DNA of 63,988 nt, the filler included, from Ministeria vibrans ATCC 50519 (Eukaryota > Protista > Filasterea), in NCBI GenBank assembly GCA_943704425.1. It is 13 parts of 13 records of this genome, joined end to end, with 100 filler letters (N's around TTAATTAATTAA, not from the genome) between each part and the next. Parts side by side here need not be neighbours in the genome. Positions count along the whole stretch, not along the records: positions 47,949 to 53,173 come from CALSCP010002355.1; 12 more parts are not named here. The stretch is one strand, 5' to 3'. The stretch's first letter is position 1; each line of letters opens with the position of its first letter. This document shows, piece after piece, positions 47,949 to 53,173 of this stretch. The translations under genes and the position numbers were made by a program. The notes under the pieces are model-generated. The model saw only the letters and a list, made by a program, of their open reading frames with translations. It was not told the DNA's origin and ran no database searches.

Positions 47949-50900
47949 GCTGAGCGATGTGTTTGCGTATGTGCGGGGTGAGGGGGTGAAGTTGTTCTGT
48001 GAAGATGAGACTGGGCCAGACCAGGTGGACGGTGCACTGGCGACAATGAAGGGACACAAGGACAACGTGAGTGGCATTGCGATCACTCCAGATGAGCAAT
48101 TTCTGGTCAGTGTGTGTTCGGACAGGACTCTCATGGTGTGGGAATTGAAGAATCACGCACATGTGCGAACTGTTGAGACTGGCCACACAGCGTACGATTG
48201 TTTGTTTCGATGGTTTCTTCTCATTTGATTGTGTTGTTTTCACAGTTTCATCAATTGTGTGTCAGTGTCTCCCGATGGACTGAGAATGGTCACTGGCTCA
48301 GCTGACTGCACTTTGAAAGTGTTCTTGTTTGAGAGTGGAGAGTGTGTTATGACTCTCACTGGACACAAACAGTAAGACATTTGTCCAAATGAGTTTTGTC
48401 TGATTTCTGTTTGTGTTTTCTCTGTAGATCCGTTGAGGCGTGCGAATATTCGACTGATGGACTGTTCATTGCGAGTGGATCATATGATGACACAGTGAAA
48501 GTGTGGAATGCGCAAACTGGAGCGTGCACAATCACTCTCACTGGTCACTCAGTGTAAGTGTGTTTGTGATTTCTTTTGTTTCGGCTGATGTCATTCTTTT
48601 GTTAGTTTGATCTACTCAGTGGTTTGGTCTCCCGACAATTTGCAAGTGCTCAGTGGCTCAGCTGACAACACACTCAAGCTGTGGGACCGTGAGAGTGGAA
48701 AGTGTCTCATGACACTCACTGGACACTCAGAGTATGACAAATCCACTCATTTGCACTTTCATTCAATTTTCTTTTCTCGTTTTTAGGGGAGTGTGTTCAG
48801 TTGATTTCTCACCAAATGGACTGAATGTGCTCAGTGGCTCAGATGACAGCACAATCAAACATTGGGACATCAAGAGTGGAAATTGTGTCGTCACTTTCAC
48901 TGGTCACTCAGAGTAAGAGTAAATAACCAATTCTGAATCACTTTTTTTATGTCTTATTTAGGTCTGTTTTGTGTGTGAAATATTCACCAAATGGAATGAA
49001 AGTGCTCAGTGGCTCCGGTGACAACACTGTAAAACTGTGGTGTGTTTTGAGTGGAGAGTGCGAGCGCACCTTTGTGGGACACACAAGGTAAGAATGAGAA
49101 TGAGAAGAGACAAAATGCATTTGAGTGTGTCTGACTCACTTTTGGAAATGTGTAGCGGCATTTACTCATTGGCACTCACTCGCAATGGACTGACTGTCTA
49201 CACTGGCTCTCGTGACAATACCATTCTCGTGTGGTCTTGTGCAAAGGGAACGCACATTGAAACACACTCCGTCGAACAGTTCGTGCTCAACTCAGATCTC
49301 ATTCTTGTTTGACTCATTTTCGCTTTTGTTCTCAGTGCTCCCAAATCGATTGAGTTCTCTTTGGACGGACACGCACTCCACATTGAGTGTGAGTCAGACA
49401 CAGTTGATTGGTCCGTTGCTGACACGCTCGAGCTGCACAATCCGTAAGAGACACACACACTCACTCCCAAACGCAGACCCTTTACACTCGATGTGTGTTA
49501 CTTGCAGGAACACATTCCACCGATCAGCCTTCAAGTCGGCGCTGGGTCGTGGGTCGGTCGAGTCACTGTCGATGAAAGTGCTGTTTATGGGTGCAGTGAA
49601 GGCGGGCAAGACGGCACTACTTGCGGCACTGCAGGGACACTCATTGCCCGAGGAGAAAGACCGGTCGATTGCCACACGATTTCAGCGCATGCGACTGGTG
49701 TTCAACAAGGAGGGGGGCTTCTTTGAGGCAGTGCCGGTGGAGGAGTACCGTTTGAAGAGCATGATTGGAGAGAAGAAGGTGGTGTTGGTGGAGGAGGAGG
49801 ACGGAGGAGGAGGAGGAGGAGGAGAGAGTGAGACTGCAGGGAGTGCTTCGAGTGGGCGCTCGGCAGTGATTGCCCCAGCTCACCCTGTGCCAACAACATC
49901 ATCATCAACCACGACGCGTATGACACCAACACCTGCCACACCCATCGCCATTACTGCCGGTGCCAGTGCCCTCACGATGAGTGCGGTCCAAGACCTGCTC
50001 AAGGGCGAACTGAGCGAGCAGCACATTGATCTAGACACTTTCGACTTTGCTGGTGAGAACGAATTGACAGTTTCACTGTACCTCGAATAGACACTCATTT
50101 CTTTCTATTACATCAGGTGAAGCAATGTTTGACTCGCTGCCTGCGCTGTTTATGGGCTCCGAGTCGGCCTACATCCTTGTCTTTGACCTGTCCGTCATGA
50201 ACGACGCCACACAAGCACAGCGGCAGTACGAGCACCTGTCCAAGTGGGCTCACCTGATTGCGCACCAAGTGCCGGAGACGCTCACGTCGTACTTCCGCGT
50301 GCTCATTGTAGGCACCCATCTCGACACGTTCCCCGACGACACTGCGCCGTCGTCGCTGCTGCGTACTGTCTCTGATGACATTGATCGCGTCGTGGGACCG
50401 GTGTTGGGCAACCACTTGATTTTGCCAGAGTCTGGTCGCACTCCGTTCTTCCAAGTGGGCAGCGCAAAGGGCATTGGCCTGCGCGAGCTCAGCGAGGGGA
50501 TGCGTGCTGCAGTGCGTGGTCGGCGATTGCCACTGGAGTATGTGTGTGCACAGGATCTGGTTGGTCGGTGGTCGCGGATGGGCCGCATTGAGCTGCTGTC
50601 GTCTGTCGCTGATCTGCCGAGTGTCGTTTTGAGTGAGACCACGCCGGTCATCACAGTCGGGTCGCTGGTCCCCGACGAGTACGCACTGCGCACAGGACTG
50701 GTGCCATACCTTGAGGAGGCTGCGGATGTGTTGGTGTGTCGTGAGGACTCGAGTACACGAGGCGTGAGTGCTTCGGACACGATTGTGTTTGATGTGCCGC
50801 GTTTGATTGCGGCTGTTGAGTTGCTGTGCTCGGTGGTGATGGCACAGTGGAAGCGGGCGACGAGTGATCGCGCGCTTGACATGCTTGATCTGGTGAAGGC

Positions 50901-52175
50901 GGCAGGACGGCGACTGGACAACAAAAAGACGTTGAAGCTGTTTGCCGAGCTGGACGAGGCACGACAGAGGTCGGAAGAGGGATTCCCTGTTGACGTTGCG
51001 TTGTGGCTCGTGTGGACTGCGGCGGCGCGTGAGGCGAAGGGCGAGCCGCTCCTGGCTGGTGCGGACGTCCCAGACGGGCTGACGCTTTTTTCGGCACTTG
51101 AGCGACTGAGTCTTGTGTTCCAACACAACACTCGCTTGCTCGTGCCGATGCTGCTGCCTGAACATGCACCGTTTGTCAAGACAGCGACAGCCGCACCAGT
51201 ACAGGTGATGCTGTACCAGGTGGTGAAAGACGAAGAGGACACGCACTCCGTGCTTCCCGTGTCACTGGCGACCTTCCATCTGGTTGTGGTGGCGCTGTGG
51301 CGCGAGACGATGAATGTGTGTGCGATCCGAGCGACTCAGCGATGCACGGATGTGCTTGTGATGGACAGGTGTGCTCCTGTGCGACTGCGTCTCAATGCGG
51401 GTGAGGATTTCATCCGTGTGGAGGTATTTGACGATGGGGGGCCACCGGAGCGAGTAGTGGCGACGTTGCATCGGGTGAGCACGCGAGTGTGTGACCAGAC
51501 GCGGAGTCTGCGGTGGGGATGGCGCGGTGTGCCTGTGCTTGTGCCCGCGAGTCCAATGAAACCATCACTGCCTCTGTTTCGACCATTGGATGTGGCTGCG
51601 TCACCCGATGTGTACCGTGAAGAGGGGACGCTGGGTGCGGTGCTGCACAGCAAGGAACCGCGGGAGTGCAACAAGAAGCTTGAAGAGTGGTGGACCAAGC
51701 GAGTCGGTAAGCTGATCACCGTCACCAGAATCAGTACATAAGTTTTGTTTTTTTTTTTTTTTTTACTGTAGCTTGCAATGTGGGACCGCGTTNNNNNNNN
51801 NGCAACTCGGGGGCACTGCTGCCGCCCGACCGAATCCAGACGGAGGCGTCGGTGGTGCAAGGGCGGTCGGTGTTTGCGCGCCAGATCATGACGAGTGCAC
51901 TGCGCGATGCTTTTGGCTACGTCGCGCTCGACGGGACGCGCACGCGTCTGACCGAGCTGCTTCAACGGGCCTTTGGGCCAGCAACATTGGGGGTGTTCCG
52001 CGATGGCGAGGAGTCGCTGACGGCGGTTGAGCTGCGACAGCGACTGCAACAGCTAGACAAGGAGGACACGTTCCAGGCGTTTCTGGTGGGGCGCATATGG
52101 GACGAGTGGTGCGGCACGCCCAACGAGGGGGATGTTGTCTTCTTCAAGACGGGTGCTGGTTTGGTCATTGTGTGA
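47949..52175 (+). CDS. WD40-repeat plus Roc-COR (ROCO) GTPase, 5' truncated
   Basis: Seven to eight WD40 repeats (GH...SGSxDxTxKxW); Roc motifs KVLFMGAVKAGKTALL, TFDFAGEAMF, SAYILVFDLS, VLIVGTHLD, FQVGS; followed by a COR-like region (LLVPMLLP, FHLVVVAL). Confidence 0.85.
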
Positions 52176-52181
52176 ACGAAT

Positions 52182-52288
<107 letters not shown>

Positions 52289-52351
52289 TGTATCAAACAG
52301 AGTTTGGTTTCCGATCCGTTGCATAAAATTGACTGTGTTCGGCGGGAGAAA

Positions 52352-52441
52352 CGCAGACTGCACCCCCTGAAAAATTTAAATCGCAGACTGCACTCTTTTC
52401 GCAGACTGCACTCTTTCATAATTTCGACTCGCAGACTGCAC
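52352..52441 (+). repeat. Four direct copies of CGCAGACTGCAC
   Basis: Copies at 52352, 52382, 52400 and 52430. Confidence 0.85.
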
Positions 52442-53053
52442 CCTTTTGAGTCTATGACTCAACGAGTTGTTCCTGCATTGATTGCTCTTGCAGATGGGTC
52501 TGTACATGGACCATCCCAGCGACAAGTAGTCGACTTGGGCGCGACTATACGCATGAGACGACGTCGTTTTTCTTCTCGAAAGAAGAAAGTTCATTCAGGG
52601 AGTCCTTTTAGGGCCATCTACTGCCTGACTCCCCCCATTACACCTCGTAGCTGGAATGAATGAAATATATCTGATTCTAAACCTAGCGCCTCTTTTGCCT
52701 TTTCTGCCCAAGAACCTGCAAAATAAATCTCAAGCAGTTCCACTTCAGGTTCAACAGTCCAATATAGTACATAATTCGGTCGATATCTGTTATTGGAACA
52801 CAACTTTACAATGTTTTTCGCAACATAATAAGTTTCCAATACACATGCTGTTTGATAATATTACATATGGCGAAATATAGTGCGTGTTGGCAACTTACAC
52901 GGTTTATCATAAATTTGCACGGCTTAAGTTAAAGCGCCTAAAAACGCTTCTCTGCGGCCAAATCTGACTAATGCGACACGACCACTCCTCGCAGATGACT
53001 AGAAATTTGCAGGTAAAATCAATCAATGGAAAAGGTGTGTAATCGGAACTTTC

Positions 53054-53173
53054 TTTTTTTTGGAAGTCCTAGGGCAAAAGCTTCATTGTACAAGACAATC
53101 TAGCCATCCGAAGCGGCTGCTTCACCCCCGCATGGGCCGAAGCGGACATTCCGAGAGACTTGCATGCAAAGCC
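53054..53173 (-). mobile_element. Short poly(A) retroposon, copy C (cut by contig end)
   Basis: Near-identical to the reverse complement of 4416-4526. Confidence 0.8.

Follow-up and report, generated by a model that had tools for sequence, protein, structure and literature searches.

A spliced WD40-Roc-COR gene with a predicted caspase-like protease exon and a fixed one-blade-per-exon layout in the Ministeria vibrans assembly

Whether a WD40 propeller with one repeat on each exon is a device for generating receptor diversity or simply an inherited way of encoding a propeller is the question raised by a gene in the Ministeria vibrans ATCC 50519 assembly (GCA_943704425.1). The window, that is, the whole stretch of DNA that was analysed, is 63,988 nucleotides (nt) long and joins 13 parts of this assembly. 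The gene is a multi-exon gene on the + strand of the part at positions 47,949 to 53,173 (CALSCP010002355.1), and its 5' end is cut by the edge of that piece. A preliminary description, made from the sequence alone, presented it as a WD40-Roc-COR gene whose symmetric 126-nt exons might be shuffled in an immune or non-self receptor. The analysis reported here leads to a different answer. The protein is a WD40-Roc-COR-caspase-like protein in one chain, the C-terminal caspase-like domain having been overlooked in the earlier account, and the one-blade-per-exon layout is inherited, now fixed and common to the paralogues with the propeller region on their contig. On balance, the gene probably encodes a sensor-switch-protease of the ROCO family, with such inherited, fixed blade exons, whose nearest described system is the bacterial Roc-COR-CHAT protease.

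Nearly the whole gene lies in the piece; it has at least 11 exons and encodes a protein of approximately 1,350 amino acids (aa). Five consecutive exons are exactly 126 nt each and the sixth blade exon is 123 nt, and each of these blade exons translates into a stop-free WD40 unit of 41-42 aa. Introns 1-7 (54, 56, 52, 55, 49, 68 and 57 nt) are all GT..AG introns in phase 2, interrupting the second codon after GH, and each blade exon has a pyrimidine-rich AG acceptor and a GT donor (GTA in the five 126-nt exons). This exon/intron pattern is far beyond chance and recurs in paralogous loci: among the related contigs, coded L001-L007, 126-nt blade exons with phase 2 on both sides are also present in L003, L004, L005 and L006. 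The exons of the window gene and its last intron are as follows.

47949..48191, + strand: exon 1, cut at its 5' end; N-terminal strands and WD40 blade 1; open frame from 47950; Pfam WD40 E 5.1e-9.
48246..48371, + strand: exon 2, 126 nt, blade 2; Pfam WD40; junction 48190>48246.
48428..48553, + strand: exon 3, 126 nt, blade 3; Pfam WD40; RNA-like junctions.
48606..48731, + strand: exon 4, 126 nt, blade 4; Pfam WD40; junction 48551>48606.
48787..48912, + strand: exon 5, 126 nt, blade 5; Pfam WD40; joined to exon 6 in X18 record 18.
48962..49087, + strand: exon 6, 126 nt, blade 6; Pfam WD40; RNA-like junctions.
49156..49278, + strand: exon 7, 123 nt, blade 7, less canonical; Pfam WD40 E 6.1e-5; junctions 49085>49155 and 49278>49336.
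49336..49443, + strand: exon 8, 108 nt, degenerate blade-like or closure segment and linker; junctions 49278>49336 and 49443>49508 in three RNA-like runs.
49508..50052, + strand: exon 9, N-terminal half of Roc; motifs read directly; joined to exon 10 in X17 record 11.
50117..51706, + strand: exon 10, C-terminal half of Roc, then COR-A and COR-B (approximately 50527-51705) from motifs, profile and predicted fold.
51707..51771, + strand: intron 10, 65 nt, phase 1, with a T-run; position kept in all seven loci that reach it; loose ends at 51708 (X17, X18).
51772..52175, + strand: exon 11, predicted caspase-like (C14/CHAT-type) protease and stop codon; BLAST to L001, alignments A2 and A3, Pfam and Foldseek.

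Logan contigs of three RNA-like runs (X8, X17 and X18) and of one DNA run (X1) were compared with positions 47949-51790. Contigs of the RNA-like runs skip every predicted intron from 1 to 9, and those of the DNA run skip none. The skips 49278>49336 and 49443>49508 are exact GT..AG skips, and one 311-nt contig (X18 record 18) links exon 5 to exon 6. At several junctions some letters differ, and multiple variants map to one place, which fits transcripts of close paralogues or of other strains. The gene is transcribed, and it is from a marine eukaryote. With these spliced contigs, the exon coordinates, the 126-nt lengths and the 123-nt sixth exon of the preliminary description are confirmed, as are its phase-2 introns of 49-68 nt at one and the same position (introns 1-7); the residues that it quoted from the repeats are also correct.

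The missing 5' end can be estimated from a paralogue. An open reading frame (ORF) of L005 (291-554) aligns to exon 1 and has an ATG start approximately 45 residues ahead of its first GH, which places the propeller at the extreme N-terminus. Compared with the ATG-started L005, the window gene is without some 8-10 5' codons, including the start. Scanned singly, exon 1 and the six blade exons all match Pfam WD40 (E 5e-10 to 6e-5), and the propeller has seven clear blades and a degenerate closing segment; the L005 counterpart of exon 8 gives a weak match to the blade hidden Markov model (HMM) (E 0.036). By the usual WD40 strand order, each exon would encode strands A-D of one structural blade.

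The propeller is followed by a Roc GTPase domain, the G1, G3, G4 and G5 motifs of which are intact on direct reading: the P-loop GAVKAGKT at 49590-49613 in exon 9, DFAG at 50043-50052 with its last codon finished in exon 10, and THLD (G4) at 50314-50325 and SAK at 50461-50469 in exon 10. LRRK2 has the same G4 variant, THLD. Between the P-loop and DFAG (approximately 49755-49990) lies a low-complexity insert of some 80-90 aa, first of Gly/Glu and then of Ser/Thr/Pro/Ala; an insert is present in the paralogues as well and is quite different there, e.g. a long Ser/Thr/Ala run in L007. The domain is interrupted by both an intron and this long insert, and its exons were scanned separately in Pfam.

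Exon 10 gave no Pfam family, with approximately 390 residues after SAK free of any match, and phmmer of exon 10 against PDB sequences returned noise. Eight relatives of exon 10 (51-97% identity) were found, all in two samples of a single study and six of them in one sample. The alignment of exon 10 with these relatives (A1), used as a profile, gave seven weak matches in the PDB (E 0.12-1.1), six of which are LRRK2 Roc aligned across THLD. Among 1.84 billion representative proteins, the same profile found the family itself and four weak matches (P0012-P0015; E 2e-4 to 7e-4) that cover the Roc part of the profile, three of the four carrying Pfam Roc and two COR-A. The COR region is very divergent.

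Fold comparison was more informative. In the AlphaFold (AF2) prediction for the exon-10 product, residues 140-529 are modelled with confidence, and 16 of the 17 best Foldseek matches of this model are ROCO structures (6hlu at E 1.8e-4, 3dpt, LRRK1, LRRK2). With VIA-align, Z was 11.0 to C. tepidum RocCOR (3dpu_B, 297 residues aligned), 10.2 to C. tepidum COR alone (3dpt_A) and 9.4 to LRRK1 843-1225, with approximately 280-297 residues aligned. Protein-atlas neighbours of the exon-10 product are COR-A/Roc clusters. At the level of the predicted fold, and with the weak profile matches to Roc/COR-A proteins, COR lies directly C-terminal of Roc. The Roc-COR call is right, for a very divergent member known by motifs and fold and not by curated sequence models. 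Further, dN/dS (the ratio of non-synonymous to synonymous substitution) of exon 10 is 0.22 between the window gene and L001; Roc-COR is under purifying selection.

The final exon is incomplete in the assembly. A run of 9 N at 51793-51801 stands for 450 nt of coding sequence, which by BLAST is present in L001 (2791-3240), a contig of an ENA metagenome assembly that is 96.5% identical to the window gene at the nt level over 2.8 kb, introns included. This gap takes out the first 150 or so residues of the protease exon, the catalytic His included, and most of the Cys codon. L001 and six paralogues show the exon whole, at approximately 280 aa, and H98 (in VHLLGHG) and C155 (in CDFCNSGAL) are invariant in 12 of 12 family sequences. 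The sole sequence match of the family profile in the PDB is Arabidopsis metacaspase-4 (AtMC4), the VHYSGHG and DSCHSG of which align to the GHG and DFCNSG motifs. Pfam PF00656 (Peptidase_C14) matches 7 of the 12 members (best E 1.5e-7) and CHAT (PF12770) matches 5 of them; L001, the counterpart of the window gene, has neither at E 0.01. The model of the protease domain (m443edf85dcbe; predicted template-modelling score, pTM, 0.78) has 229 PDB matches at E <= 1e-3, and Foldseek matched it to MALT1, caspase-9, -3, -4 and -8 and metacaspase-9 with E down to 1.1e-6. Language-model neighbours of the domain are bacterial C14 proteins. The final exon is predicted from these alignments and models to encode a caspase-fold protease of the C14/CHAT type with a His-Cys dyad.

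Linkage of the four domains is seen in the related contigs. The intron between COR and protease has the same codon phase and GT..AG ends in the window gene and in L001, L002, L003, L005, L006 and L007, and L003 and L005 each have propeller, Roc, COR and protease in this order on a single contig. For the protease domain there are 15 relatives, and these and the exon-10 relatives constitute a paralogue family.

Between positional orthologues of this family, differences pile up at repeat positions 1, 3, 4, 19, 21, 29, 32, 38 and 41. The positions named as variable in the preliminary description (1-3, 19 and 21) are indeed fast-evolving between paralogues: in blades 2-5 of L003 and L005, the proportions of non-synonymous (pN) and synonymous (pS) differences at these positions are 0.59 and 0.49, a ratio of 1.21 that comes from 20 codons of one paralogue pair and is not demonstrated to exceed 1, compared with 0.40 elsewhere. 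Random five-position sets reached a pN of 0.59 in 1 of 2000 draws. The presumed binding face, as judged from these substitutions, evolves at about the neutral rate, which fits either diversification or relaxed constraint; with 20 codons, the two are not separable.

Variation was also observed at the level of individual runs. In four runs, contigs depart from the window sequence in blade 2 (48302-48333) at codons 19, 21, 27 and 29, and codon 19, a propeller-face position, has two different non-synonymous alternatives. These differences may represent alleles, strains or very close paralogues.

The sensor-switch-protease favoured here would work as a single-chain sensor, switch and executioner, in much the same way as the gasdermin-activating Roc-COR-CHAT protease of bacteria. 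A ligand would bind to the top face of the propeller, which differs between paralogues at the usual ligand-contact positions, and binding would be relayed through the nucleotide and dimerisation switch of Roc-COR. The switch may then bring together or release the caspase-like domain, with cleavage of a downstream substrate as the result. Variety within the family would come from gene duplication and from point substitution on the propeller face. A bolder version, which we regard as possible and no more than tentative, is that of a eukaryotic single-chain 'ROCO-some', in which a marine protist would have a set of intracellular receptors, each propeller face with its own non-self or danger ligand and each switch acting through the fused protease in regulated death or defence. 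If true, this would be a eukaryotic counterpart of the bacterial Roc-COR-CHAT/gasdermin system and a GTPase-based alternative to apoptosomes and inflammasomes.

The same architecture could also serve ordinary signalling or scaffolding, with a fixed partner and limited housekeeping processing, as in many metacaspases and paracaspases, and with paralogues that arose by sub-functionalisation and have no role in conflict or death. The Roc-COR dN/dS of 0.22 and the stable gene structure are in keeping with this explanation, and no gasdermin-like or other death partner was seen in the approximately 1 kb downstream; moreover, in any propeller the WD40 loops are where constraint is weakest, so their fast change need not be adaptive. 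However, several paralogues differ mainly on the propeller face, and the described systems that combine repeats, an NTPase or GTPase and a caspase-like domain are systems of conflict or death (PMC7159879; PMC8195603; bioRxiv 10.1101/2021.06.07.447441). An ordinary role of this kind is considered rather unlikely.

As to the exon layout, blades in the window gene and the paralogue contigs were counted with the blade HMM. Seven blades were found in the window gene, L004 and L005; L003 has six clear blades and a weak seventh, and the partial contig L006 has four. In a tree of 28 blades (41 columns), position labels require 10 changes, where the minimum is 6 and the mean of shuffled labels is 19.5, and none of 200 shuffles was as low. 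Blades 1 and 7 form well-supported groups, and blade 2 of the window gene groups with blade 2 of L003 and L005. Exon similarity is highest between same-position blades of L003 and L005 (76-85% nt). Within one gene, blades share 41-58% protein and 53-69% DNA identity, their third positions are near saturation and their introns are unalike. The repeats are old, predate the paralogues and have kept their order. The layout is what an ancestral tandem exon duplication would leave. Recent exon duplication or gene conversion, as an explanation for the repeats, is ruled out by the 53-69% exon identity and the unrelated introns.

The diversifying role first proposed, in which symmetric 126-nt cassettes are skipped, duplicated or swapped by splicing or recombination to vary a non-self receptor, is very unlikely in the light of these data. 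It draws on real features of the gene: the blade exons are symmetric, with phase 2 on both sides, so that a skip or duplication stays in frame; there are several paralogues with fast surface positions; blade 6 of L004 is most like blade 4 of the others; and L002 has another N-terminus joined exactly at an exon boundary. Against this, the propeller-bearing paralogues have the same blade number and layout and their blades cluster by position, and exons within a gene are too dissimilar, with third positions near saturation and introns unalike. A closed propeller also tolerates changes in blade number poorly. In addition, the predicted exon skipping was not seen, there being no whole-blade skip among the 15 junctions listed, out of 40, from the three RNA-like runs; this is a weak negative, as contigs drop rare forms. 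There is no sign of active shuffling, and no evidence that the layout generates diversity today.

L002 deserves separate mention. At L002:14-1185, this 74%-identical paralogue has no WD40 blades upstream of Roc. An unbroken ORF instead runs from a cullin N-terminal-like start (Pfam Cullin E 6e-6; CUL3-like by eye) straight into the Roc P-loop, and similarity to the window gene begins exactly at the exon 8/9 junction of the latter. Either a genuine chimera that arose at an intron position or a misassembly of the metagenome would account for this.

Several points weigh against the sensor-switch-protease interpretation with fixed blade exons. The Pfam check proposed in the preliminary description bore out WD40 in exons 1-7, and the GTPase motifs, the COR fold and the N-terminal propeller agree with its WD40-Roc-COR assignment; Pfam Roc (PF08477), however, stayed below its gathering cut-off of 27 bits both in exon 9 (E 0.052, 14.2 bits) and in L001 (E 0.0025, 18.5 bits), and neither COR-A nor COR-B matched exon 10. 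ROCO membership consequently rests on motifs, fold and weak profile matches. Homology searches were done exon by exon, so that Roc was seen as two halves, and structure prediction covered the exon-10 product and the protease domain, each as a single-exon product. The catalytic part of the window gene's own protease falls within the gap and is predicted from L001 (96.5% nt) and the paralogues. The face ratio of 1.21 has the narrow basis given above. Blades 3-6 of the window gene fall into no resolved group in the 41-column tree, and L004 blade 6 is most like blade 4 of other paralogues (71% nt), so some old rearrangement may have occurred. Finally, a role in cell death or immunity and the signalling logic are suggested by analogy, with ligand, substrate and phenotype all hypothetical.

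A decaying copy or an assembly artefact, with the multi-domain gene no working unit, might be suspected from the gap inside the last exon, the long low-complexity Roc insert, the short metagenome scaffolds that make up the related contigs and the chimeric look of L002, and is highly improbable given that all exons are open, spliced transcript contigs cover the gene, dN/dS is 0.22, independent contigs share the architecture and the catalytic residues do not vary.

For a ROCO-family sensor-switch-protease, the closest known system is that of Runella, in which a Roc-COR-CHAT protease cleaves a bacterial gasdermin; other gasdermin-linked caspase-like proteases carry WD40, TPR, LRR (leucine-rich repeat) or NACHT domains (bioRxiv 10.1101/2021.06.07.447441). 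Conflict systems of the repeat-NTPase-caspase kind have been catalogued (PMC7159879; PMC8195603). Judged by the described domain order, the Runella zeae protein is alike in having Roc-COR followed by a C-terminal caspase-fold protease in one chain. The gene described here differs in being eukaryotic, intron-rich and spliced and in its N-terminal WD40 propeller, and no gasdermin gene was seen in its flank of approximately 1 kb.

Canonical ROCO proteins (C. tepidum Roco, LRRK1/LRRK2, DAPK1, MFHAS1) share with it a Roc domain with a THLD-type G4, followed by a COR-A/COR-B fold. In contrast to these, the present protein is without LRR, kinase or death domain, has its WD40 at the N-terminus and not at the C-terminus, has a protease as its output and is of very low sequence similarity. 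The earlier statement that ROCO proteins carry WD40 at the C-terminus only is too strong, as an N-terminal WD40 is mentioned in PMC11378527. Trichoplax ROCOs with CARD and death domains, and brown-algal ROCOs with one LRR per 72-nt phase-2 exon, are described in the same paper (PMC11378527). The comparison with the brown-algal LRR-ROC-COR genes made in the preliminary description holds formally, in that the N-terminal repeats each lie on a symmetric phase-2 exon (PMC11378527). Here, however, the repeats are WD40 blades of a closed propeller, in contrast to the open solenoid of LRRs; the number of repeats does not vary, a mosaic order was not seen and no splice variant is among the junctions listed.

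A second comparison, with Podospora HET-E/HNWD, does not carry over. Both have WD40 repeats and a nucleotide switch, and variability falls at the same positions of the propeller face. The HET-E/HNWD repeats are nearly identical and evolve in concert, whereas the blades here are 41-58% identical in protein (53-69% in DNA); the switch is Roc-COR and not NACHT, lies C-terminal of WD40, and the effector is a protease. The likeness fails because near-identity of the repeats, its defining feature, is absent. With the Apaf-1 apoptosome and caspase-9, the resemblance is one of logic (WD40 sensor, nucleotide switch, caspase activation by induced proximity), and the protease model matches the folds of caspase-9 and MALT1. 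The differences are a GTPase (Roc-COR) in place of an AAA+/NB-ARC ATPase, a protease that is fused and not CARD-recruited, and a reversed domain order.

A 2019 review of ROCO proteins recognizes three architecture groups and never mentions a caspase (PMC6337361). No description of a eukaryotic ROCO fused to a caspase-like domain was found in the searchable literature, coverage of which is incomplete and gives no proof of novelty. What is new here is a eukaryotic, intron-rich WD40-Roc-COR-caspase family; sensor-switch-proteases as a kind are already known.

ROCO proteins have been studied mainly for LRRK2, and their described outputs are kinases, death domains or none. Through a eukaryotic ROCO with a caspase-like output and a WD40 sensor in front, this GTPase family is connected with the sensor-switch-protease logic found in apoptosomes, inflammasomes and the gasdermin systems of bacteria. 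As the family is small, compact and transcribed, it lends itself to tests of how a fused enzyme is governed by a Roc-COR switch, and it could reveal whether receptor-triggered death in protists involves caspase-fold proteases. The exon layout itself illustrates cleanly how tandem exon duplication builds a propeller, with, by the strand-order reading, one structural blade per exon.

Base composition divides the gene into two parts. GC content at third codon positions (GC3) is 40-52% in the intron-dense WD40 part (47950-49441) and 64-69% in the intron-poor Roc-COR-protease part (49509-52172), and the same split is found in L003 and L005 as in the window gene. The split may reflect a constraint that splicing places on short exons, or the two halves may have had different histories.

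In the approximately 1 kb downstream of the gene, no convincing ORF or gene was found, and no death partner or substrate was seen there. One feature directly follows the stop codon.

52182..52285, no strand assigned: (GA)n microsatellite of approximately 100 nt, probably 3' untranslated region.

Just beyond this microsatellite and approximately 180 nt past the stop codon, four copies of CGCAGACTGCAC stand at 52352-52447 as two 48-nt units that are 79% alike; Rfam gave no match in the piece, these repeats included. Further downstream, at 52600-53173, GC content drops to approximately 38-46%.

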